Origin: Octopus bimaculoides
Lineage: Eukaryota
Direction: 5' to 3'
NCBI RefSeq assembly: GCF_001194135.2
Contig: NC_069000.1
Span: 23,582,589 to 23,646,588 of the forward strand
DNA length: 64,000 bases
Program-made: the position numbers and the translations under genes
Shown: positions 1,186 to 37,400 of the stretch, one piece after another
Layout: the number at the start of each line of letters is the position of its first letter
Numbering within the stretch: position 1 is the first letter of the stretch
The notes under the pieces: generated by a model
The model's input: only the letters and a program-made list of their open reading frames with translations
Database searches by the model: none
What the model was told of the DNA's origin: nothing

Positions 1186-1341
1186 TCAGATATATCCCTT
1201 GTATTCATAGTTCTTGGAGTATATCTTGTAAATGGACTCAAATACATGCTTCATGCTTTGTGGAAGAATGGCATTTAGACTATTAAGCATATGGTTGTTG
1301 CAAGACATGAGTAAACAATAAAGGCTGGAGTTTAAGATGTT
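1186..1341 (-). CDS. URB2: URB2 exon 28 (last coding exon)
   Basis: ttttttgcag| NILNSSLYCLLMSC..LPQSMKHVFESIYKIYSKNYEYKGYI-TGA; typical Urb2 C-terminus. Confidence 0.93.
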   Translation of the reverse strand, partial: NILNSSLYCLLMSCNNHMLNSLNAILPQSMKHVFESIYKIYSKNYEYKGYI

Positions 1342-4300
1342 CTGCAAAAAAAAGGTAAAAAAGAGAAACAGAAAATTGCTTAAGTAAGAAGAATTTTGTT
1401 TCAATCATAGAAATTAGTCATATGAAAGTTATTAACTTTCAAACAAGAGATTTTTTTTTCTTTTTCATTTATACAAGAATTGGTTGGTTAGTTTTGCAAA
1501 AATTGTAAATATGTAGAAATTGTTAAGAATCAAAATTTTTTCACTTGGTCACTTATTTGCAATTAAAGAATAAAGTGGGACTTGAAATATTTTTCTGTTT
1601 CATAGAATGAGTTGAGATATTGTAAACTTAAGATTTTTACAGCTGTGACAGAGAACAGTGAAATGTAGCCCTATCTTAAACACCAATAGCATTGTTTAAC
1701 AGTTACTACCAGCAGTATAACAGCTACTGCCACCATTAGCACTCAGTAATAGCCTCAGTGAGAGCTATTGCCAGCAGTATTCAATAGTACTTACTACTAT
1801 CAGTACTCAATAATCACTTCTACTAGCAGTACTCAGTAATAGCTACTGTCAGCAGCATTTGTTAACAGCTATAACTATTGCAACTATAAAAATGACAGGA
1901 ATACAACAGAGTATAATTGCTAAACAGTTCAGTATTTTGTAGCAAAACTACAAGTGATTGTATTGTGTCAGATATTAATCTATTTCAAACTTTTTCTGTT
2001 AATGTAGAACGAGTGAGGAAAGAATAAACATAGCTTTGCACATCTGCATATGATTTCCTTATCCATAAAATTGTTTGGTACTAATGATTGAATATGACAG
2101 TATAAACAGGTTTCTTATGTAATTAAATCAAAGGAGAATCTTACCTTTACAGTTGGTAAAAGAGTCACATTTGAATATGCAGCAATGAATTCAGCTATCA
2201 CATAATTGACCACACTGTTCAGCTCTGATTTGTGGATGGACATGCTATTTATCAGTCTGTAGGTAATAAAAGAGCAGTTTAAGTTGTATTTAGGTATACA
2301 AAACAGTAACTTGTGATAGAGAAAACTCCTGAACTGTAAAATAAGAGTAAGTATATCATTATCAACATTGTTTTGTGTGCGCTTTTCCATACTGGCATGG
2401 CTTGCACGTTTTCTGAGGTAGTGTCATCTGGTTGTAGCCAGATGTTCTTCTTGTCACCCTTTTTAGTCACATGTGCAGGGACAGTGTATTTATATCTGTA
2501 CCTATCTATACAGACATATATATACCATTTTTTAAAGAAAAGGTACATTATATGCCTGCATGCTGTTAGAATTAAAGACAAGGAGTTGGAATCAGAGTTG
2601 TAAAAATGTATGAAATCCAACAAGATGTCAATAGTAATGTACTAAAACTTCCAATTTCACATATGCTTATATAGTGTATGTGGTGCTGACATGTACACAT
2701 CAGCCACTTGCTATATACACTGTGTGCACACAAACAGACTCAAAATATGCTGTTAGAAAACATTAAATAATGTGCCAATATGCATTTTACTTTTAATTAT
2801 ATACATATCATAGGGCCATTAGGGAAAAGAAACAGGTATGGAAAGACTGGAAGAACAGTAGTAGCAGGGAATTGTATCAGACTGCCAGAAGGGAAACTAG
2901 GAGACAGGTTTATTTAGCCAGACAGGAAGGAGATAACAAAAAGTTTGCCAATGTTCTGCATCATGAGGATGAAAGACTTGAAGTATTTCGTGTTGCAAAA
3001 CAGTGTGTGAGAGAGAATCGTGATGTCATAGGTGAGAAATGTGTCTGCATGGATGATAGCTCACTTGCATTTAACGAAGTTGCAAGAAGAGAGACTTAGA
3101 GATGCCACTATGGGACGTTGCTAAATGAAGAGAATGAATGGGAGAAAGATAGTCTGCCAAATGTTGACCCAACAGAGGGACCAGCTATCCGAATTGACAG
3201 TACCTTGGTAGATAAGGCAATTAATGGTATGAAGACAGGGAAAGTCCCTGGCCAATCGAGAATCACTGCAGAGATGCTTAAAATATCTGGCGGTGTTGGC
3301 TATAGTCTAGTCAACCAGGTGATACATGGAGTCATACTCAATGAATGGTGTAGGAGCACCATAACTGCTACAAAGATAAAGGTGACACATTAGATACAAA
3401 TAATTATGGAGGTGTCAAGTTGTCAGATCAGGTAATGAAAGTCACAGAGAGGGTCATAGCACGACTAATTCGGTAGAGAGTCAGTCTAGATGAGATGCAG
3501 TTTGGATTTGTGCCAGGGAAAAGCACCACTGATGCTATATTTCTGGTAAGACAGCTGCAGGAGAAATACCTAGCCAAAGATAAACCTCTGTGCCTGGCTT
3601 TCGTTGACATGGAGAAAGCCTTTGACAGGGTTCCCCGATCCCTTATCTGGTGGTCAATGAGGAAACTAGGGATAGATGAATGGTTAGTGAGAGCTGTACA
3701 AGCCATGTACAGGGATGCTGTCAGTAAAGTAAGGGTTGCCCTGTTTGATCTGTAGAAAAGGCGTAGGTAGAAACCCCATAAGGTGTACCCAGTTTAAGCT
3801 ATGGACACATAAGAGGTGCAGCAATATCAAAGGAAGGCTAACAGGGAAGATAATTTTTGTGTGTGGCAAATGCTCAGGAGCAATAAACACTGAAAATGTG
3901 CAGAGAACAGCTTTCGTCACATTCCAGGGGAAAAAACTACAAGTAGTTGATAGCTTCCATTACCTAGGTGACCAAGTTAGTAGCAGGGGTGGGTGCACTG
4001 AAAGTGTAGCTGCTAGAACAAGAATGGCCTGGGCAAAGTTGAGAGAGCTCCTACCTCTGCTGGTGACAAAGGGCCTCTCGCTCAGAGTAAAAGGTAGACT
4101 TATGACGCATGTGTGCAAACAGCCATACTACATGGTAGTGAAACATGGGCCGCAACTGATGAGGACATGCGCAAGCTTGCAAGGAATGAAGCCAGTATAC
4201 TCTGCTGGATGTGTAATGTCAGTGTGCATACACAACAGAGTGTAAGCACCCTGAGAGAAAAGTTGGACTTAAGAAGCATCAGATGTGGTGTGCAAGAGAG

Positions 4301-7300
4301 TCGACTGTGCTGGAATAGTCATTTGTTGCACATGGATGAAAACAGCTGTGTGAAAAAGTGTCACACCCTAGCAGTTGAGGGAACCTGTGGAAGAGGTAGA
4401 CCCAGGAAGACCTGGGATGAGGTTGCCTCACCGAGGCAATGACAAGTGAGCAAGACCTTTGGAGATATGCTGTGCTTGAGAAGACCCGGTAAGCCAAGTG
4501 AGACTGTAACCATGGCCTATGTCAGTGCTGTATAACCAGCCCATTTAAGAGTACCCTTCAATCATTGGACAATAAACTATGCTTGTGAAGACCCGTTGCG
4601 GCAAGTGAAATCGTTGTCGTGGCCTGATTGGCAACTGTGCCAGTGGAACATTAAAGACACCATTCAAGTGTGGTTGTTGCCAGTGCCACTGGACTGGCTG
4701 CTGTGCAGGTGGCATGTAAAAAGCACCATTTGAGCATGGCCAATGCCAGTACCACCTGACTGGCCCTTGTGCCGGTGGCACGTAAAAAGCACCCACTACA
4801 CTCTCGGAGTGGTTGGTGTTAGGAAGGGCATCCCGCTGTAGAAACTTTGCCAGATCAGATTGGGGCTCGGTGCAGCCTTCTGTCTCACCATCCAAACCAT
4901 CAAACCCATGCTAGCATGGAAAGCAGACATTAAATGATGATAATCATGATCATCATCTTTTGTTATAAACAGCATCTACATTTTGCCATGTATGTGTGAA
5001 TCTGCAGTGTTTGTCTTTGTGCAGCAATACTGATATTGTATCAGTTTCAAAAGACACTACATTTACAGAATTTTTTACTTTGCAAAGACAACACCTTGAC
5101 TTGAACACTGCTTTATCATACACCTGGAACAAAACAAAATGGTCAAGAAGGAAAAAAGGTGTTCTTGTTGAAGGTTGTAAACATGTCTAATTTCATTATA
5201 ATTTGGGAAGTCTCTATAGGTGCAGGCATGGCTAAGTGGTAAGAAGCTTGCTTCCCAACCACATGGTACTGGGTTCAGTCCCACTGTATGGCACCTTGGA
5301 CAAGTGTCTTCTACTATAGCTTTGGGCTTACCAAAATCCCCGTAACTTAGCAGTTTGGCAAAAGAGACCAACAGAATAAGTACTAGGCTTAAAAAATAAG
5401 TGCTGGGGACTATTCATTGGACTAAGAATTCAAGATGGTGCCCCAGCATGGATGTGGTCTAATGATTGAAACAAATAAAAGATATAGAAATAATACATTT
5501 CTAAATCTCTCAGAGAGATTTATACAGTAGTAACATGATAAAATGGTGGTATGTTGTCAACTTATTGTGACAGTCCCATGAAAGGGAAGAATACTACTGC
5601 TATTTAGCCCTAGGAAGCACCACTTCCTGTCGGCCTTGACACATTTCCTGTGTCCTTATGTTTACAAAGGGGGAGATAAGCACCTCCACCCAGCAAAGCN
5701 NNNNNNNNNTGTTTACAAAGGGGGAGATAAGCACCTCCACCCAGCAAAGCCAGCATCCAGAGACTAGTTTCTGAGTCATTGCTTGTCATCAGTCTGGAGT
5801 AGCATGGCTTGCTAGCTGTCGATGCCTATCTGCCTCTGTAAACATAAAAAAATAAAAGATACTCTTCATATAAGTCAGGAAAGTTTCTACTTAACAATGC
5901 TCTTACATGAAAAACTCAGCTTTGAGCAGTGGATAGTCACATTTGTGCTACATACAGAGAAATAGGTTTTCCGTGAGGCTTGATACAAAATGGTGATCAG
6001 TGGGGAGTAGCAGCTTCACAGTCACATTTAAGACAGTGAAGCCTCTTTACAGTTCTATTATTGGACTTAGAAGTGAAATAACTCTTGAAGAACATCATTC
6101 ACATTTTTTTTATATCCATAGTCTTTTGCTTTTGTCTCATGAAATGCAGCTCTGTTATTTCTGCCCAGTGAGCTGTGTTCTGCTCCCGCTAATAGAAGAA
6201 AGCTGGTAACACGAATAAGAGTTATTACTTAGATTTATTTACTTACCTTGACAATAAATTAGCACAGTTACATATTGCTTTTTCTGCAGATTTATTGTTG
6301 CTTAATTTATCTTGGGTTCCTTCACCAACCACAGCAACTATCAAACGTTAGACAGGTCAAGGAGAAAAAACGGACTAACACCAAGAAAGATTCAGTCTCA
6401 AAAATATAAAAATGATTAACATAATGCTTCATTAGACTAAAGATTCAATTGTTTTGCCATCTCTAACCTAAAGTGTATCCTAATTTTCTATTATAAAACA
6501 AAAGAAAATGAAAATATTCACTTTCCTTAAACAGCTACTAAGCTTATCAGATGAACTGTATATAGTAATTTAGCTTCATTCCTTTACAGCCTCTGCACAT
6601 TGTTTTTGGCTCTTAGCTCTTGTGGAAGGTGCGAGCAATAGAATAAGAAAAAAATACCTTCTGCATAATAATGCCAAATTTTTTCGTCTTAAATAAAATT
6701 AATAAAATTTACATGATATATGATGTCCAAAATATCTTATGAAATACATCATCTACAAAAAGTTAATCTAAAAATAAATCTTGAAATACTAGTTTGCTTA
6801 AAGTACTCATTGAAATATAAATTTGTAACACTGTTCTTGTGTAGTGACCATCACTTTTGTTTAGGGGGCATCTATACTAAGATGGTTGACCTGGCATTTC
6901 TGCACAACATTATACCATCATCATTTTACAGCTGCTTTTTCATGCTTGCATAGGTTAGAGACGTCTTCTCTTGCACAGTGTCTCACCATCCTTTGTCATC
7001 TTTGTGAGGTTCAGCTTCTTGAGATCAGCTTTCCTGTCTCAAATTAGAGCTTGTATTTTTTAATATCAATTGCATAAAAAATACCTAGAAAAGGATATGT
7101 TTTACTATTCCAATGAAACTTGGAAGTGTCAGCAAGATGACATCTGTGTATTCTGTGAGCAGAATGTTCAAGACATCATAGAGAGCTTGGAAAACAGCCT
7201 CAAAGGTAGCTGCATCAAGGTTTGAAAGAGGCACGAATTGGCAACCAAATATAATGTGTAAAGCTGTCTGGGGTGGTATGTTTTTCTGAAAGGAAACAAA

Positions 7301-16900: not shown

Positions 16901-19900
16901 GGTGCTAAACAACAGTTAACAGACATGCAACATGTATGTGATCTCTGGCTCTGCCTCTCTCTTTCTCTCTCCCTCTCACACACACACAAATAGTACACAT
17001 ACATGCATCGTAAATGATGACAATACAAAACCATCAGACCTTGCCAAGTTCCTCAATAAATTTGGATGCAAAAAGAAACTTGAGTGAGTACTTCTTTTGA
17101 ATATATTCCATGGAATGTGACCTTTTGGAAATCCGATCTTTAGCCTTCTGGAGATATTTGAATAACTGTTAAGAAAAAGAAGAAACATAAGCCTTTATAG
17201 GTTCTCCTGTTTATTGTCATTTGTTGAATTAGTACGGCATCAGACAACAGTGTAATATTAGTTATATTTATGTTTTAGGTTCAAATTCATTTGGGAACAA
17301 CTGTTCACTTAGTCATGTCAATTTCGTCAATGTCACCCACCTTCATAAAATATACTGAAGGGCAACACCTCTCTACCTTCACCTTCTTCAATTCTTCAAG
17401 TGATACTTGAAGTTGGTGAGAATACAGTCCAAGATGAAAAGTTCTACCCTTAAACCTTTCAACAATATTCAATGGCCTTCACCATAGCTACAAGACAGAG
17501 GAAGACAATTTATACTTCCTTGCTGAAAGAAGACAGTGAATCCATTGTAACAATAAACTTGTGTGATAACCAAGTTTATCTTGCACATAATGAGTGCTGC
17601 TCAAGATAAACCCACAAATCAGCAGTGCATGGACACTGAACACTTTCATTACCTTGCATGCACCTCAGACAACAATCATGCTTGTATGTATTCCACACAA
17701 GGAAAACCCACTTACTATAGCAGTCCCAGGCCAAGAACTTCTAGAAATTCTACACAATCCCTGACCTGAAACTTTTCCAGAAGAAATTACTTGGACAGTT
17801 CTCAATGATGCTATCATTCCTCATACCCTCCACTAACCCTTATTAGAATGCAAACATTGAGGTTTTCATCAGCTGCATTGTTCTCTTTTATAGTGCAGTG
17901 AATACGTGGTAACATTCCAAATGTTAAATGCTTGGCCTTACTTGGCATTTTGTATCTCAATCAAAAAAGTGAGCTACACAAAGACATGTTGCACAAACAG
18001 CGACCACATTTGTTCATCATCATTGTCCAGAAATTTCTCCAGATACGTCAGCCCCAGCATGTGCCTGGTTATTACCAGCCAAGGCATCCTAAGACACTTT
18101 TCGAGCAATTGTAGCAGTAGATGGATCTTCTAACCAGTGGAACTTGTCTCTTCAACAAGAACATGGATGCATGCATGGTTGTTTAAGAATTTATAGTCCC
18201 ACATTTGTTATACTGCATGACACTTTGGGCAAGTATCTTCTACAATAGCCTTTATGGTTGACCAATACTTCATGAGTGGAATTTGGAAGGTGAAAGCTGC
18301 ATAGGACCTGTTTTGTGCGTGTGTGCATGCCTGTTATCTGCTGACACTGTAGGTAGTACTTTTAATACACAACTCTAAGAAATCTGAAGTTCCTTAACGA
18401 TTTCAGATTGACTTAATTTTACACATCTCAGTTATTCTGCACATGTTTTTTTTTTCATGTTATCGGATGTTTAACATATTGCATTACACCACACCAAAAT
18501 GCTGTGCACTTTGTCCATTACATGTATTTGAAACTTGGAACAGGACAATTTGATCTGAGTCTTGTAAGTTTCATTATGATTGCATATAGATCTTTACATC
18601 TGTTTTTCTATGCCCACCTCAGTTAGATGCTTACATATTACATCAAGGTATTGTTTTTAGAGCCAGATGCCCTTCCTCTTGCTAACCCATACCTATCTTT
18701 CAAGTAATGGCTCTCTTATTCTACACATCTTTGAAAGTCTACAGCCAGCAAACAATTTGCTGACAGGGAAATGGTAACAAGCAAATAGCTCAGCACTTTT
18801 AGATGCAAAGCACACAGAATGTAGATGTAACCCTTTAAACACACACACACATGTATATATAATGGGCTTTGTATAGTTTCTGCAACAAAATTCACTCACA
18901 AAGCATTGGTCAGCCCAAGCCTATAGTAGTAAGCACTTGCCCAAGAGGTGCACTGCAATGGGAATGAACCCAAAGCCATGTGGTTACAAAGCAAACTTCC
19001 TAACACAGTCATGTCTGCACCAAAACATATAAATGCATATACACACATGCATGCATACATGTGTGTGTGAGAGCGCATCTATATATGTACATGTATTTCT
19101 GTATAGGGATTTACATCCTGCAGGCTTTGCATGAAGAAGCACCGAGCTACAATTTGTTGTCATTTCCCTATCAATAAATCATCCATTGGTTCTGTGCTAT
19201 CAAAGATGTGTGGAATAAGAGATCCATAACTTTGTGTGTGTGTGTGTGTCATTATTTTTCCATATATCAATCATCATCATCATCATCATCGTTTAACGTC
19301 CGCTTTCCATGCTAGCATGGGTTGGACGATTTGACTGAGGACTGGTGAAACCGGATGGCAACACCAGGCTCCAGTCTGATTTGGCAGAGTTTCTACAGCT
19401 GGATGCCCTTCCTAACGCCAACCACTCAGAGAGTGTAGTGGGTGCTTTTACGTGTCACCCGCACGAAAACGGCCACGCTCGAAATGGTGTCTTTTATGTG
19501 CCACCCGCACAAGCCAGTCCAGGGGCACTGGCAACGATCTCGCTCGAAAATCCTACAGGAGCCAGTCAGGCGGTACTGGCAACGGCCNNNNNNNNNNNNN
19601 NNNNNNNNNNNNNNNNNNNNNNNNNNNNNNNNNNNNNNNNNNNNNNNNNNNNNNNNNNNNNNNNNNNNNNNNNNNNNNNNNNNNNNNNNNNNNNNNNNNN
19701 NNNNNNNNNNNNNNNNNNNNNNNNNNNNNNNNNNNNNNNNNNNNNNNNNNNNNNNNNNNNNNNNNNNNNNNNNNNNNNNNNNNNNNNNNNNNNNNNNNNN
19801 NNNNNNNNNNNNNNNNNNNNNNNNNNNNNNNNNNNNNNNNNNNNNNNNNNNNNNNNNNNNNNNNNNNNNNNNNNNNNNNNNNNNNNNNNNNNNNNNNNNN

Positions 19901-21359
19901 NNNNNNNNNNNNNNNNNNNNNNNNNNNNNNNNNNNNNNNNNNNNNNNNNNNNNNNNNNNNNNNNNNNNNNNNNNNNNNNNNNNNNNNNNNNNNNNNNNNN
20001 NNNNNNNNNNNNNNNNNNNNNNNNNNNNNNNNNNNNNNNNNNNNNNNNNNNNNNNNNNNNNNNNNNNNNNNNNNNNNNNNNNNNNNNNNNNNNNNNNNNN
20101 NNNNNNNNNNNNNNNNNNNNNNNNNNNNNNNNNNNNNNNNNNNNNNNNNNNNNNNNNNNNNNNNNNNNNNNNNNNNNNNNNNNNNNNNNNNNNNNNNNNN
20201 NNNNNNNNNNNNNNNNNNNNNNNNNNNNNNNNNNNNNNNNNNNNNNNNNNNNNNNNNNNNNNNNNNNNNNNNNNNNNNNNNNNNNNNNNNNNNNNNNNNN
20301 NNNNNNNNNNNNNNNNNNNNNNNNNNNNNNNNNNNNNNNNNNNNNNNNNNNNNNNNNNNNNNNNNNNNNNNNNNNNNNNNNNNNNNNNNNNNNNNNNNNN
20401 NNNNNNNNNNNNNNNNNNNNNNNNNNCCCCCACTACTAACTTGGTCGCCCAGATAGCGGAAGCTATCGACTACCTCTAGTTTTTCACCCTGGAATGAGAT
20501 AGAAGTTGTTTCCTGTTTGTTTGCAGTCTTTATTGCACCTGAACATCTGCCACAAACAAAAACTAACTTGCTAGTTAACCTGCCTTTGATGTTGCTGCAC
20601 CTCTTATGTGTCCATAGCTTGCACCGGGTACATCTTATAGAGTTACTACCTACTCCTTTTCTACATACTGAGCAGGGCCATCTACCTGAAGGGGTTTGTG
20701 TTTTATCTACCTTCCTACTTATTAGGATTTTGGTTTTAGCTAGGTTGACTCTAAGGCCCTTCAGTTCTAGACCTTGCTTCCACACCTGAAACTTCTCCTC
20801 TAGTCAATGATGGATGTAAACATCATTGAAAAATTGTTCCTTCAAATGACACCTAGCAAATTACAGATGCTCCCTTGTCAATCTCTCCATCAGAAATACA
20901 GCGAAAGAGTGATTGGTCCTTTGGAAACTTGTAACCAATGATGTTAATGCTTGTAAATCGTGATATTAGATAAACAAATAACATGATGCAATGCCAGTGC
21001 TGCTTGACTGGCACCCGTGACAGTGGAACATAAGAAGCACCATTGAAGCGTGGCCAATGCCAGCGTCACCTAACTGGCACCTGTGAAAGTGGTACATAAA
21101 AAGCACGATTCGAACATGGCCAATGCCAGTGTCACCTGACTGGCTCCCATGCTGGTGGTACATGAAAAGCACCCACTACATTCTCAGAATGGTTAGCATT
21201 AGGAAGGGTATCCAGCTGTAGAAACCTTGCCAAATCAGATTGGAGCCTGGTGCAGCTTCCTGGCTTGTCAGTTCTCAGTCAAACCATCCAACCCAATGCC
21301 AGCATGGAAAGTGGACATTAAACGACAATGATGATGATGGAAAAGAAGACATTAATAAT

Positions 21360-22125: not shown

Positions 22126-22383
22126 CTAGGTGCAGGCATGGCTGTGCAGTAAGAAGCTTGCTTCCCAACTACATGGTTCTGGTTTCAGTCCCACATGTGN
22201 NNNNNNNNNNNNNNNNNNNNNNNNNNNNNNNNNNNNNNNNNNNNNNNNNNNNNNNNNNNNNNNNNNNNNNNNNNNNNNNNNNNNNNNNNNNNNNNNNNNT
22301 ATATATATATATATGTATGTATATATATATATATATGTATGTATATATATACATATATATGTATGTATATATATATATGTATG

Positions 22384-22435
<52 letters not shown>

Positions 22436-22454
22436 CGTGTGTGCGTGTGTGAGC

Positions 22455-22488
<34 letters not shown>

Positions 22489-25400
22489 GTGCCTTTGAGT
22501 TTGTTCCCCCCACCCATCACCGCTTGACAACTGACGTTAGTGTTTACATCCCCGTGACTTAGTGGTTCGCCAAAAGAGACGAACAGAATATGTACTAGGC
22601 TTTAAAGAAATAAGTCCTGGGGCTGATTTGTTTGACTAAGATCCTTCAAGGTAGTGCTCCAGCATGGCCACAGTCAAATGACTAAAACAAGTAAATAAGA
22701 GAATACAGATTTAATCCTCCATTACATTAATGATACTTAGTTGATAACAATGACATCAAAATTATCATCATACACTATTAGGTGCAGACATGGTTCCAGG
22801 TTCAATCCCCCTTGGACAACTGTCTTCTGCTATGGGCCTGGGCCTACAAAAAGCTTGTGAGGAGATTTAGTAGATGGAAACTGAAAAAGGCCCATGGTGT
22901 GTGTGTGTGTGTTACTGTCTCTATTATGCAAGCAGAGTCCTTCATTCCCAATTGTTTGTGATAACATGTCTGGTCGTGGGGAAATATTACCTTACTTGGA
23001 AAAAAGGCGAGTGCTGATGACAGGAAGAGCATCAAGTTGTAGAAATGTGCCACAATTCCATCTGATTCATGCAAGCATGGGAAAGTGGACAGTAAAACAA
23101 TGACGATAATGATATTCAGAGAAGTCTACATCAAATAGTGCAATATGTAACTGGCTGCCCAGCAACTAGTCATGTGATTTAAGTTCTATCAGTGAGCTTT
23201 TTCCTCTCTTCCACTTCAGGCACATAAAAGCATCCACTACACTCTCGGAGTGGTTGGCGTCAGGAAGGGCATCCAGCTGTAGAAACTCTGCCAAATCAGA
23301 TTGGAGCCTGGTGTAGCCATCTGGTTTCACCAGTCCTCAGTCAAATCATCCAACCCATGCCAGCATGGAAAGCGGACGTTAAACGATGATGATGATGAAT
23401 GTGATTTATATTGAAATTTTAGTCATTAATTCCTAATATCAACATCATTCAATGTCTACTTTTCTATGCTTGCATGGTTCAGATGAAACTTACTGAGGCA
23501 GATTTTCTACAGCCGGATGCTATTCCTGCACTAATCATCACTTGTATCCAAGTAAGGTAATCTTTCCCCTTCTCCTTCAAACAATGAACAGCTCAATGCT
23601 AGACATGTTTTCCTGGAAGTGAAGTGGCTGTGTGATAAGAAACTTACTTCCTAACCACATGATTCCAGTTTAGTACCACTGTGTGGAACTTTGGGCAAGT
23701 GTCTTCTGCTATAGCCTCAGGCTAACCAAAACCTTGCAAATGGATTTGGTAGACAGAAACTGAAAGAAGTCTGCCACACGCATGTGTATGTGTGTGCCCC
23801 ACCTCCATGTGACAACCAATGTTGGTGTGTTTACATCCCCACAACTTCACAGTTTAGAAAAGAAACTGACAGAAGTATTAGGCTTAAAAAATAATAAGTA
23901 CTGGGGTTGATTCTTTTGATTAAAAATTCATGGCAGTGCCACAGTCGAATGACTGAAACAAGTAAAAGATAAAGACCAATGTCACTATTTGTATGACTGG
24001 TGACTTTATTTCCAATCAGCACACAAATGTCGAGACAAGGGGGAACTCCAACACACTCACACATGCAAACACAAACACATAAATATACTTATATGACAGT
24101 TTTCTTATAGTTTCTGCCGACCAATTTCACTTAAAAGCAATGGTCAGTCCACAACTATAGAAGAAAACATCAACAAAAAGTGCCCATGAAGTGAAAAACA
24201 CACTTTAAACCATATGGTTCAAAAGTAAAGTTCTTAGACACACAGCCACAAGTTATTAATTATCCTGTGTGCGTAAGTAAAAGCAGGGTATTGTCATCAC
24301 ACATCTTTGTTTGTCTGTGTGTTGGCAAAATTACTGGAAAACAGATGAACGGATTTTCACCAAATTTGGCAGAAATACTCATTGGGTGAGTGACTTGAAA
24401 TGATGAAAATTTGGTTTGATTATCTTCAAACATACATAAATACGCTATTGTGTGCATGTGTATGTGTGTACAGTGATGGATTCAAGGGTTTTGTTTATTT
24501 ACGAGTTGATCTCTTAATTTCACTGGAGCGTAAATACTTATAATGGGGATACGTAAAAAAAATTTTTTTTTTTTAATCGAACTTACAAATTTCTCGATAA
24601 GCAAGTGGTCATATATTTATGTCCTACAATGAACAACAGTACATTTGATTCACCTGCCATCATTGAATGATGTTGCTATGCAATATTTTCCATAAGTATT
24701 TCATTTTGTTCACTTTCTTTTTCATATGAATTGACCCTCCTTTGTGTGTATAGATCAAGGTGTACCTATGCATGTAGACATGTGTGGGTGCATACATACA
24801 TAAATAAATACATACATAGATATGTGACTGTGTGTATGTGTGTGTGTGCATGTACATGTGTGTACAGTGATGGATTCAAGGGTTTTGTTTATTTACAAGT
24901 TGATTCCTTAATTTCACTGTTCTTAGGCTTCTAATCCTCTTTTAGTCAAACACTTACAAAGCTTAATTCAGTTCAATTAAAAAGCATGGGTAAGCAAAAC
25001 AATTTATCTGCGCACAGGGTATGCATCACTCCTCTGATGCCTTTTTTTTTACATTGCAAATAGGTAACTGGTCTTATTTCTAACTATTGAAAAATAAACC
25101 AAAGCAAAAAGACAATAAGTCTCTTGCCTATCTTGTCTATCCATACCTGTTCTTGAATTTTGCTTAAGGAAGTTTCTAGAAAATTAAGTACAACTTCTGG
25201 TCTGAGATAGTTGTATATAGAAACATTCTCTGAAGACTTCATCAAAGTGCTTAGGCAGTCAGTGCAGTTGGTAAGCAGAGAAAGTTTTTGGTCATTTGGT
25301 ACTGTACTAACTAGGTTACTATCATCTGGACAGATGTCACTGACAGAACAGCATGAAATTACAAGATGCAAGCCAAATATGATCTGGATTTTCTCATTTC

Positions 25401-31400: not shown

Positions 31401-34400
31401 GCACACTTGAGGTCAAGGTGCTGTGACTTCAGGTTTTATTCAGTTTGTTTCACCCATGTCTTCTTTGGTGTGCTGCACTGGACTCTCCAGTACAAAGCTA
31501 CACATTGGTGAGTTTTCAATAAAATTTACCCAAGACTTTGACTGGTACCTTATTTTACTGAGAGGAACAAATGCAAAGTTCAAGTTGATGGAATTTGAAC
31601 AGAAAATATTAAAAGCCTGAAGAAGATATTGACAATGAATGATTTACCTGGCTGTCACTATCATTTTAACATTAATGTTTTTTCATACAAACATGCACTG
31701 AATGTCACCCCAATCAATTTTGCAATGTCTTATCTGTCAGCTCTAAAGCTAACATGTCTGTCCCAACCAATTTTGACATATATATATATTATGAAAAATT
31801 TCTTTTGGCCACTTTCTGTCTGGACAGAAATGACCCAGGGTATTGTAGCCATATCATTATCAGACACCAGATTTGGTAAATACAGGCAGAAAAGCTCCAG
31901 AGAAATATATACTATTTAGTATCATCACTTTACATTCTGAGTTCAAATTCTGACAAATTAACTTTGCTTATCACAAGTTGATAAAATAAAGTACCTGAGT
32001 TTGATAATGTGTGGCTTTGTACCAAAGAAATCAGCCAAAGAATGGCAGAATTGTTAAGGTGACAAACAAAATGCCATGTGATGTGTAGTTACAGACTTTT
32101 ACATTTCTATGTTCAAATCCTGCCAAAATCATCTGTCTTTCAGTTTCCTTGCATTGATAGAATTGACTATGCCATTCCCCAAAATGTGGTCTTGTGTTTA
32201 TATAAGAAATCATTATTATTACCATTATCGTCCCTTTAAAGAATGGATCTTTAAATTTGCTTATGCCACACTGCAGATTATAACAACTGAATTCCCTTCC
32301 AGTCATTCCTTTAACCTTTTTGATGCCAATCCACCTGAAACCCTTCTAAGTCAGTTCTTATTCAGAGTCAGTATCTTCCAAGATGGGTCAAAGGACTGTA
32401 GGTTGCTTGTACATTTCATTAAAATTAAAGCAATGTAATAAATGAAAATAAAATAAATGAAATTTCAAACCTTTCTGAATGTTCAACTGTGTCAGTAATC
32501 AGAGTTTGAACAATATATTGAGAGATAACCAAAATGTTTTGTGGAGTGAAAAGTGGAAACAAAATTGGAAGGTTAGTGGTGAGAAACCACCATGTAGCCT
32601 GCTTCATTGTCCTTACAGGAATATGAGGGTGCTGAAAAGAAGAAAATTACAAAGATAGTGGTTTAAATACTAAGGAATGAATGAATGATATTTATAATAA
32701 AATACAGGAGCCATTTAAAGTTAGAGGTTGAAAAACCAATAGGAATTATTATGAAAGGATAAGGAATTAGTATTCAACTTGTGTCAAATAGTGAATTGGT
32801 ATGGTTCTTGCAAAATCACATGGAATTTCATAACAGAATAAAGTAATGAATTATTTCTTAATTTGTGAAAATTAAAAGTGATAAACATCAGATGTATGAC
32901 TGTTGATAAACATTATAACAATGAGTAAATGAGCCCTGTGGACTTTAGGAAAGAGAGAAATAAATTTTGAGATATTCACTTCACCCTTCACTTTGCATCA
33001 GAAGGTTTAACTATGAAACTAAGCTAAACTTGTTGCAAGCAGAAATTGGCTTATTTGTTATCTTTGTGCCACAGAATTACTTCAAAAGAGGTCATTGAGG
33101 CTATTCAATGAAACTAACATCTGCGTCATCATCAGCACCAACACAAAACCTTTAAGCAGAGAGTGACTTTGGCTTATTCCTCTGGACCACTCCTCCTCTT
33201 CAAGTGCCCTTAATTCACAGGCAATTTCTTTGAAGCTCCACCAGTCTTTTGCCAGGTGTTCCTATAGTTATCTTTAGTTTATTCTGATTTCATTAGGTCA
33301 TTTTTAGCCAAGTCTTTTTCAGTACTCTTTTGTGGCTAGAGATGTGGAAATAGTCTGTATGGCAACTTTGAATAAGCCATTCAATTCACATAGTCATACC
33401 AGTACAACTGATTACTGAAGCAAGTTTATCATTGCAGACAGTTAATCCACAATACTCCAAGGATTAGACATTTTGCTTGAAAGACTATCAACATATCCAA
33501 ACCATTCTACAGTAATGTTTATGATTTGGTACCATACAACAAACAATGCAGGAAATAAAAAGTTGATTCATACATAAAGATTTTGGTGATATAAAGTTTT
33601 GTTGAACAACAATTAAGAAGACCAAAAGCAAACAAGTGAGCTGCTACATGATCATTCGATTTGCTAAAAAATAGCAGCAAAATTCCCTCAAAAGAAAGGA
33701 TATGTTTGATAATGTAATCCTACATATATCTAAAAGAATGGGATGATGACGGCTGCTATGTCTCTAATTGTAAGGTATGATCAATCAGAACTGACCTTGG
33801 ATTAAAGGACAGCAAAACAACCAAAGGTCAAGAATGCTAATGAACTTCCATTTTTGATATCCTAACATGCAGTAATTTTATTTTCTTCTATATATGATCT
33901 ATAATATTTAAACACAGTAACTTATTCTAACTAATGAGACACTGCTCTAAGAATCGTCCATAACAAGTAGTTTGTACTTATCAACATCAGCATTAAGACT
34001 AAACTACAAAGATATATTTTAGCTATTTTGTAGGACCTCCTTGGCCTTGTATTTCGTGTCAGCAAACATTGCACACAATCATCAGCAAACAGAAGACTGG
34101 TGATATAGGACTCTGACAAAATTGTAAATCTCTTTTGGAGATGTACATCTTCATTACTGCATAAATGACAATATTGAATAACAGAGTGAAATGCAGATTG
34201 TATAATGTATGTGTATGAATAGCTGAGCTACATGGCAGTGAAACATGGGCTGTGACCACAGAAGACATGCAAAGGCTTAAAAGAAATGAAGTCAGCATGC
34301 CCTGCTGGATGGGTAATGTCAGTGTGCATATGGATGAGGAAGGCTGTATAAAGAAGTGCTGATTCTAATTCTGGGTGAACCTGTGAAAGGGATAAACCCA

Positions 34401-37400
34401 AGAAGATGTGGGGTGAGGCTTTAAGTGTGAAGCCTCACAGAGATGACAAGGAGCCGAGACTTTCCAACATCCCCCCACCCACTGCAGGCCTCTCCACTCT
34501 ATCATGTGCCTACCTGCACACTCTACATGCTCTCACATATCTACCATACCCTCTGCCAACCACTCCAATTCTTCTCATCATCACTTGCTATCTCTAAACA
34601 TCACCCACAATCTTATGGAACATCCCCCTCTATCCCTTCTACTACTTATACTCCCCCCCCACACTGTTCCCTGTGAGTAGGCCCTCTCTTTCTCACTCAG
34701 ACTGTCTCTCTATCTTTCTCTCCAACTCTCTCCCACTTTCCTCTCCTCTGTTGTCCTACTGGGGTAGCCAAATGTCTCCTCTTTAGTAAGATGGCTATTT
34801 CTGTCCCTCTAACCTTTTGCCTGGCACACAATTACTTTTCTCAGTTCCACTCCCTCTCTCAGCTGAGAGGTATTTGTCTTGCAACCTACTTTGCAACCCT
34901 ACTGATACTGGTGCCATGTAAGAGGCACCTGAGCTGGTTCCACGTAAAAAGCACTGATGCTGGTGCCACATAAAAAACACCCAGCACACTCTGTAAAGTG
35001 GTTGGCATTAGGATGAGCATGTAGAAACCAGCTGAAGAAACCATGCCAAAAGAAACAATTGGAGCCTGGCACAGCTTTCTGGCCAGCTAGCTCCTGTCAA
35101 ACTGTGCATCCCATGCCAGCATGGACGTATCATGATGATGGATGATGAGAGGTGAGAGGACACAATCTTGTATAATGCCTATTTTAACTGAAAAATAGCT
35201 CTTCAACCACAATAATTACAACATACCACAATTTTATTCTGATTTTCAACAGGGACTTCACTATTTTCCTTTGACATCAACATGTTTACGATTCCACTCA
35301 AATCACAAATCTTTGCTTTTTTCTTTTCTGTTTCAGACTCTGGGAATACTTGTACTGCTTTAATACACTGCAATTGCAGTAAATACTGTCGAGAAAAAAA
35401 AAAATGTCATTTTTAACAACTGCAACAAAAAGTGTAATTTTCACATAAATTCATTCCTTAATGAAATGTCATTTTCCAATAAATTGAAACATTTACAAAA
35501 TGTGCACTTCTATTCTGAAAATTTGCATACAATTTATTCAATTTTAATTATAAATTCTGTTCCTTACTCCTTATTTTTGTTAAGTATGTGAATATTACAA
35601 ACTTGTTCATTTTAAAAAGGTACTTATGTTTTATCTCCATTTCATAAAAATATCCTTGCAATGTGCATCTATAAAATATTCACTGTGCTTTGTAACTATT
35701 TATGATGTTATATAAATCATTATCCTCATCATCTGAACATCTGCTTTATTTTATGCTAGCATGGATCAGGTGGAATTCACTGACGTAGATTTTCTACAGC
35801 CAGATACCCTTTCTGTTGCTAACCTTCACCTGTTCCCATGTATGGTAATATTTTTTTTTTGGTTGGATATATGTGTGTGTGCAGGAGTAAATCAAGTTTA
35901 TGTTTATTTTTAATTTCACTATTTCTAGTTTCATTTACAAAATGTAATTCATTTTTCCTTATACTTCACCATGTTATTTTTAATGCAGCCTTATACTTAA
36001 TTTAATGTGACCATCAAATATTAAGAAAGTTCCTCATCCCTGGTCTTAAACATTACAGTATTTAGTATGAACATAACTGCAGTTATTCAAATGCTTAGGG
36101 TAGAGGCTAGACTACCTAAAAAACTGAAGTGATGATGCTCAGCTTCTCTCTGGATCAGCAGTTTGGCTTGCCAGGCTGAGAAAGGTGTTATGAGAACAGC
36201 AGTTCACTTTTCTTACCTTACAAAACTTGTCACAGGTAATTGGGAGGAGACAATTATTTGTTATTGTTAAGGTGGCAAGCTTGGCAGAATCACTGGCATG
36301 CTGGATGAAATGCTTAGTGGTACTTCGCCCATCGCTACGTTCTGAGTTCAAATTCTGCCAAGATCGACTTTGCCTTTCATCCATTCAGGGTCGATAAATT
36401 AAGTACCAGTGAAACACTGGGACGATGTAATCGATTAGTCCCCTCCCCCAAAATTTCAAGCCTTGTGCCTATAGTAGAAAGGATTATTGTTGTTGAGTGT
36501 GGTAAGCTGGTAGAGTTGGAAATACCTTGTGGTATTTTATTCAATATTTTATGTTCTGAGTTCAATTCCACCAGAGTCTACTTTACTTTTCATCTCCCCA
36601 GAGTCAATAAAATAAAGTACCAGACATGTACTGGACTTGATAGTATCAACTAAATCCCTTGCCACAAAATTACTGGCCTTAGATCAATTGTTGTTATTGC
36701 TGAAGGCAGTGAACTGGCATAATTGTTAAAATGTAGAAAAAAACGCCTTGTTTGTCCCAGCTCTTTAAAACCCACATTGGGTTCAATTTTGCTTTTTATT
36801 CCCCTGGGATCAAGAAAAAAAGAAAAGAAATAACCAGTCAAGTGCAGGGGTATCAACTGACTTATCCCTTTTCCTCAAATTGTTAATCTTGAGCCCAAAT
36901 CAGAAACTATTATTATTATTATCAGAGTTGATTGCAGACACAGCATGAAGAACTTATTGTTTACACAACACTACTGACCTATAATTTAAAAACATGAATT
37001 AAATAATAAAACTAATGATCCATTAATTTTAATAGGCATCATCTGGTGGTAATGAGGAGGTAACTTACACAAACAACAGATCCATTTCCCCCAGACTTAA
37101 AAATCTTCTTCCGGATTGATGCAGATAGAAAGTTGAAGGTGGACAGGTCGAAAAGAAATTCCTCTTGGCCTGGTGGTGTGTAATAAGCTAATATGAATGC
37201 TATCTCCCACCATTTATAGATCAGTAGCAGGGTTGCTTCCAAAAGATGTGGATCACAATTAGGCTGAAAAATAGGTATTGCAGGCAAGATTGTAGAGTAA
37301 AATAACAGATCAATGAATCAACCAATTGAAATAGATAAATTTATAAAATGTCATGCAATGTATCAAGTTACATGATACTGGGATTCAGATGGAGATGAGT

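Follow-up and report, generated by a model that had tools for sequence, protein, structure and literature searches.

The 64,000-nucleotide stretch of Octopus bimaculoides DNA analyzed here (contig NC_069000.1, positions 23,582,589 to 23,646,588; hereafter the window) is eukaryotic DNA, rich in A and T and interrupted by assembly gaps. Its minus strand carries a complete coding region for URB2, the unhealthy ribosome biogenesis protein 2 homologue, which acts in the nucleolus in assembly of the large ribosomal subunit. About 29 coding exons were located between positions 1186 and 60643 in a tblastn search with the URB2 protein of Octopus sinensis, running from an ATG at 60643-60641 to a TGA stop codon at 1188-1186. 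The subject of this study is a 752-nucleotide, phase-1 intron of this gene (6347..7098, minus strand). Its motifs, its effect on the reading frame and its orthologous introns indicate that it is almost certainly a genuine U12-type AT-AC intron, a substrate of the minor spliceosome.

All parts of the 1513-amino acid O. sinensis protein (XP_029647240.1) could be placed in order on the minus strand of the window. The exon on the 5' side of the U12-type intron (7099..7285) encodes KNIPPQ...TLPSFIGIVK and the first base, C, of a split arginine codon. It is defined by homology and by a canonical acceptor immediately before it (...TTTCCTTTCAG/AAA, where the slash marks the intron-exon boundary). The exon on the 3' side (6247..6346) is 100 nucleotides long, encodes (R)LIVAVVGEGTQDKLSNNKSAEKAICNCANLLS(R) and ends AG/GTAAGT. 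The next exon (2145..2256; LINSMSIHK...LLPTVK) has GT-AG introns on both sides, and the terminal coding exon (1186..1341) encodes NILNSSLY...YEYKGYI followed by the stop codon.

Joining the two exons that flank the intron to these last two yields a C-terminus of 184 amino acids. This sequence matches the Pfam Urb2/Npa2 family (PF10441) with 57.8 bits, compared to a gathering cut-off of 27.1, and the match is a single uninterrupted stretch in which residues 7-182 correspond to profile positions 21-208 of 209. Pfam returns no match for the junction peptide alone, or for either of two large upstream URB2 exons taken singly. An exhaustive HMMER search with the 184-residue C-terminus recovered 154 relatives at E <= 1e-3, and those whose source names were looked up are mostly called URB2 homologues. 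The best relative is XP_029647240.1 itself, an O. sinensis 'unhealthy ribosome biogenesis protein 2 homolog' that is 95% identical over 184 residues. By its sequence, the host gene is URB2, as a preliminary description of this DNA had proposed: the Pfam score and the colinearity with XP_029647240.1 over approximately 29 exons both point to this identity.

The signals at the junction can be read directly. The upstream exon runs ...CCA AGT TTC ATT GGA ATA GTA AAA C to its last base at 7099, after which come the intron bases ATATCCTTTTCTAGG. The intron begins at base 7098 and opens with ATATCCTTTT. Its U12-type 5' splice site, ATATCCTT (7091..7098; in extended form AAC/ATATCCTTTT), has no mismatches to the consensus RTATCCTT. 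Near the other end, a U12 branch-point sequence, TCCTTGAC (6356..6363), has no mismatches to TCCTTRAC and forms the core of a longer stretch, TCTCCTTGAC, at 6365-6356. The predicted branch A, base 6357, sits 10 nucleotides before the last base of the intron, within the range of roughly 8 to 15 nucleotides typical of U12 introns. The 3' terminal dinucleotide is AC (6347..6348). From 6365 to 6347 the sequence reads TCTCCTTGACCTGTCTAAC, and the downstream exon continues from 6346 with GT TTG ATA GTT GCT GTG GTT GGT GAA GGA.

Removal of 7098..6347 rebuilds the arginine codon C/GT in phase 1 and gives the peptide ...TLPSFIGIVK-R-LIVAVVGEGTQDK... across the junction. The O. sinensis RefSeq protein holds the identical junction peptide, TLPSFIGIVKRLIVAVVGEGTQDK, and the spliced product aligns without insertions or deletions to about 40 full-length orthologues. 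The coordinates, motifs and AC terminus that had been put forward earlier, together with the peptide PSFIGIVK-R-LIVAVVGEG, are all exact on the minus strand.

Intron class was judged by counting mismatches to these consensus sequences, with the other introns of the same gene as controls. Twenty-two URB2 introns could be resolved and scored in the window. The 21 others are all GT-AG introns with three to five mismatches at the 5' site, and the best branch-like word in each has at least two mismatches to TCCTTRAC. The AT-AC intron is thus the sole U12-like member of the set.

Further evidence comes from ten genomic URB2 loci, nine from invertebrates and one from a marsupial, onto which the deposited proteins were mapped exactly. 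In nine of nine invertebrate loci, which represent six phyla, a phase-1 intron with a U12-type 5' site interrupts the same codon. The sequence ATATCCTTT forms the 5' site in the cephalopods O. sinensis (intron of 766 nucleotides, branch site TCCTTAAC) and Acanthosepion pharaonis (3086 nucleotides, TCCTTGAC), the scallop Argopecten irradians (245 nucleotides, TCCTTAGC), the amphioxus Branchiostoma lanceolatum (259 nucleotides, ACCTTAAC), the crinoid Antedon mediterranea (85 nucleotides, ACCTTGAC), the spider Parasteatoda tepidariorum (1589 nucleotides, GCCTTAAT) and the acorn worm Ptychodera flava (589 nucleotides, TCCTCAAT). The abalone Haliotis asinina has ATATCCTTC at the 5' end of a 1180-nucleotide intron with branch site ACCTTAAC. 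All of these introns end in AC. In the annelid Owenia fusiformis, the intron is 174 nucleotides long, begins with GTATCCTTA, has the branch site GCCTTAAC and ends in AG.

None of the nine orthologous introns has a mismatch to RTATCCTT, and their branch motifs have zero to two mismatches to the consensus. The distance from branch A to the 3' end is 8 to 11 nucleotides throughout. Of the 25 to 31 introns in each invertebrate URB2 gene, exactly one is U12-like. The presence of a phase-1 U12 intron in this arginine codon of bivalve and annelid URB2, raised as a check in the preliminary description, is borne out by the scallop and by Owenia. So is the proposed U12-type AT-AC class, since every sequence hallmark is present and type, codon and phase are conserved in the invertebrates sampled. 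The same description held that such introns are often mis-modeled by gene predictors. This concern does not apply to the relatives, as the deposited proteins of all nine encode exactly the AT-AC junction.

Two of these loci merit closer comparison with the window. The intron of O. sinensis (XP_029647240.1; locus L001) is alike in codon, phase and termini. Identity along the whole intron (766 versus 752 nucleotides) is 94.5%, with a few small insertions or deletions, and the branch site TCCTTAAC is at the same place as TCCTTGAC in the window; both words fit TCCTTRAC. The identity is uniform and too high to single out a particularly conserved element inside the intron.

The Owenia intron (locus L005, 27293-27466) shares the codon and phase, and it has a U12 5' site, GTATCCTT, and a branch site, TGCCTTAAC, 10 nucleotides from its 3' end. 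Unlike its eight AT-AC orthologues, however, it belongs to the GT-AG subtype of U12 introns (GTATCCTTAA ... TGCCTTAAC, then 9 nucleotides to AG). Switching between the AT-AC and GT-AG subtypes is a known evolutionary behavior of U12 introns. The Owenia locus also contains a separate called gene (18433-20361) on the same strand, nested in the range of URB2, that encodes a protein of 642 amino acids with Somatomedin_B and DUF8401 domains.

The mammalian gene has a different architecture. In the marsupial Macrotis lagotis, the junction region of URB2 lies on one uninterrupted exon with no intron at this codon, and the eight introns of the gene are all GT-AG, none of them U12-like. No intron position in the Macrotis C-terminal domain (locus L006) coincides with an invertebrate one. 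Likewise, the tables of minor-intron genes that Olthof et al. 2019 (PMC6717393) give for human and mouse have no entry for URB2, but they do list other genes that were queried, such as UBL5, VPS16 and ZNF207. A human counterpart of the octopus intron, which the preliminary description had suggested looking for, therefore finds no support in either source.

Given that the same codon, phase and type recur in nine invertebrates and that the mammal has no such intron, the U12 intron of URB2 is, on the evidence of these gene structures, an old one. It is found throughout the sampled bilaterian groups except in the single mammal examined. The eight introns of Macrotis, compared to 25 to 31 in the invertebrates, indicate wholesale intron loss or turnover toward mammals. 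Judged by this comparison, the lineage that led to mammals deleted the U12 intron together with about 20 major ones. According to a pan-eukaryotic survey (PMC10639083), minor introns are more commonly lost outright than converted. Macrotis does have a phase-1 intron (L006, 25867-30846) 15 codons downstream of the ancestral U12 position that starts with GTATTTCAC and carries TGTCTTAAT about 10 nucleotides from its AG. With four mismatches at the 5' site, its resemblance to a U12 intron is faint and is probably a coincidence.

The established view of how minor introns are spliced suggests a pathway for removal of the octopus intron. The U11/U12 di-snRNP (a pair of small nuclear ribonucleoproteins) would bind the 5' splice site AUAUCCUU and the branch site UCCUUGAC jointly. 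The U4atac/U6atac.U5 complex would join next and carry out catalysis. Branch A 6357 is predicted to attack the 5' splice site, and base 7099 would then be ligated to 6346 to create the arginine codon C/GT.

Failure to remove the intron would have a marked effect on the protein. Retention in the window adds four codons before a stop (K-H-I-L-F-stop) at the cost of about 120 residues of the Urb2 domain, and the product no longer matches Pfam Urb2. A stop is met within three to 20 codons of retained intron in ten of ten species. Since splicing at this position is needed for a full Urb2 domain, production of full-length URB2 should depend on the minor spliceosome in these invertebrates almost by definition. 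The window also contains a GT-donor-like site (TAG/GTATTT, 7087-7080, minus strand) 12 nucleotides into the intron, where O. sinensis has TAATTATT. Should minor splicing fail, this site could become a cryptic donor. Because it follows an in-frame TAG, no full-length reading frame can be produced from it.

Such dependence raises the question of whether the intron acts as a regulatory valve. In this model, which develops the earlier proposal that minor splicing gates the conserved C-terminal domain, slow or conditional removal of the intron would limit URB2 output and couple assembly of the 60S subunit to the activity of the minor spliceosome. The premature stop on retention in all ten species and the lack of an Urb2 match in the truncated product count in favor of such a valve. 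The intron has also kept its U12 type, never turning into a U2-type intron, in nine of nine invertebrate lineages sampled. Moreover, minor introns have been proposed to operate as rate-limiting switches under the control of unstable U6atac (PMC3728624). However, what can be read from these genes is dependence and not regulation, which leaves the valve as a hypothesis only. In these species the positions of the neighboring U2-type introns are about equally well conserved, so the U12 intron does not stand out in this respect. Marsupial URB2 lacks any U12-like intron, so the coupling is not intrinsic to what URB2 does. The pan-eukaryotic survey also argues that the evolution of minor introns may owe much to neutral processes (PMC10639083). 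A regulatory role of this kind is therefore considered unlikely.

An evolutionary extension of the valve model is likewise unlikely. It would hold that URB2 in the bilaterian ancestor had a minor intron whose U12 identity was kept because it throttled URB2 output, and through it 60S assembly, in step with minor-spliceosome activity, and that mammals lost this coupling when they shed about 20 introns. The simplest reading is that the octopus gene harbors an inherited minor intron without a special role.

Several considerations weigh against the assignment of the intron to the U12-type AT-AC class. The 7099/6346 join is deduced from signals in the sequence, from homology at the protein level and from gene models deposited for relatives, and the dependence on U11/U12 and U6atac is deduced from the fit to consensus. 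In addition, the 5' and branch motifs, each taken alone, are about as frequent in the window as chance predicts: ATATCCTT is found five times versus 3.1 expected, and TCCTTRAC four times versus 3.9 expected. As neither motif is enriched as a word, the argument for a U12 intron rests on position rather than frequency. The 5' motif opens at precisely the end of the exon as defined by homology, and the AC that follows the branch motif falls exactly at the point from which the next exon has to run. A rough estimate from the motif densities puts the chance that both would fall within a few nucleotides of the homology-fixed junction, and in frame, at about 2e-7. A second copy of ATATCCTT at 33696-33703 (minus strand) lies deep in the GT-AG intron 35226..32632, away from any exon edge, and fits the chance expectation of about three per window.

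A more direct challenge is that the major, U2-type spliceosome might use a GT-AG pair at this junction, with the U12-like motifs being incidental. To evaluate this possibility, all frame-keeping GT-AG, GC-AG and AT-AC pairs around the junction were enumerated. Every in-frame GT-AG pair removes conserved residues, which confirms the earlier statement that no such pair preserves the alignment. The least destructive combines a donor whose intron starts at 7119 (CAA/GTTTCA) with an acceptor whose exon starts at 6337 (TTGATAG/TT). This pair is in frame, the reading frame stays open, and a Pfam Urb2 match of 47.5 bits remains. Its use would turn SFIGIVKRLIV into a single I, however, and the ten residues lost are present without gaps in about 40 orthologues; the Urb2 score falls 10 bits below the 57.8 bits of the AT-AC product. 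The donor GTTTCA deviates from GTRAGT at positions +3, +4 and +5, whereas most other URB2 donors are GTAAGT-like. The O. sinensis RefSeq model does not use the 7119/6337 pair, and the retention of U12 signals in nine other species is not expected of incidental motifs. Splicing by way of 7119/6337 is accordingly given very little credence.

The remaining alternative, that the major spliceosome excises the AT-AC intron itself, is the least probable of all: a rare class of U2-type AT-AC introns does exist, and terminal dinucleotides alone do not settle which spliceosome is used, but members of that class have U2-like 5' sites and polypyrimidine tracts, whereas the URB2 intron has the full U12 consensus ATATCCTT at its 5' site and the branch site TCCTTGAC 10 nucleotides from its end, and the orthologous intron of Owenia retains both U12 motifs despite its GT-AG ends, which implies that the conserved feature is the U12 signal rather than the dinucleotides. 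Membership in the U2-type AT-AC class, defined by a U2-like 5' site and no U12 branch consensus, was considered separately and rejected in view of the perfect U12 5' and branch motifs.

Other features of the window lie outside the URB2 exons. Two related fragments of open reading frames derived from transposable elements reside in URB2 introns in opposite orientations, at 3736-4245 (plus strand) and 19553-20785 (minus strand). The second matches the PHD finger (PF00628, 28 bits) and is broken by an assembly gap of 839 N at 19588-20426. Similar Pro/Gln-rich open reading frames stand beside both fragments, at 4545-4895 (minus strand) and from 19345 (plus strand). A TG/TA-type microsatellite flanks a gap of 100 N at 22126-22562. 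There are nine assembly gaps in total, with N runs at 5700, 13849, 19588, 22200, 27515, 44208, 58100, 62901 and 63851, and none of them overlaps a mapped URB2 coding exon. An Rfam search of the window gave no matches, and neither a small nuclear RNA gene nor an intron-hosted small nucleolar RNA was detected in it.

Within a well-known class of introns, the octopus URB2 intron is an unexceptional case, and its junction is already present in the relatives' public gene models. What is new is the existence of a U12 intron at one URB2 codon in the nine invertebrates sampled and its absence from the mammalian gene. For annotation, the practical consequence is that this junction, being non-GT-AG, must be modeled as AT-AC to recover the full conserved Urb2 domain; the GT-AG alternative silently drops ten conserved residues. 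The evolutionary value is modest: in six invertebrate phyla one codon has kept the same solitary U12 intron, which in an annelid switched from AT-AC to GT-AG. URB2 is also added to the genes whose minor intron is present in invertebrates and missing in human and mouse, in a setting where the mammal kept eight of about 30 introns. That minor splicing and ribosome assembly are functionally linked is conjecture, and no long-standing question is opened by this intron.

A precedent for a U12 intron in a ribosome-biogenesis factor is provided by intron F of P120/NOP2. This classical AT-AC model intron, whose splicing has been demonstrated experimentally, resides in a nucleolar ribosome-biogenesis gene, although neither this gene nor its protein is related to URB2. 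No paper in the literature collection that was searched links URB2 to U12 or minor introns. The co-occurrence of URB2 and minor-intron terms in a review of maize kernels was set aside as coincidental. The pan-eukaryotic survey describes molluscs as relatively rich in minor introns and includes O. sinensis among the species compared for minor-intron conservation (PMC10639083).

Human AT-AC introns offer the closest comparison. Those of TRAPPC9, PHB2 and SRSF12 (PMC6717393) resemble the octopus intron in having AT-AC termini, a short distance from branch site to 3' end and the position of a lone minor intron in a gene with many major introns. They differ in residing in other host genes, and the splicing of the octopus intron is predicted from its sequence. 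In the case of TRAPPC9, the likeness extends to the signals themselves: the human intron has ATC/ATATCCTTT at its 5' end and the branch site TTTTCCTTGACC, whereas the window has AAC/ATATCCTTT and TTCTCCTTGACC. The TRAPPC9 signals tabulated by Olthof et al. 2019 (PMC6717393), ATCATATCCTTT and TTTTCCTTGACC, are nearly identical to those of octopus URB2.

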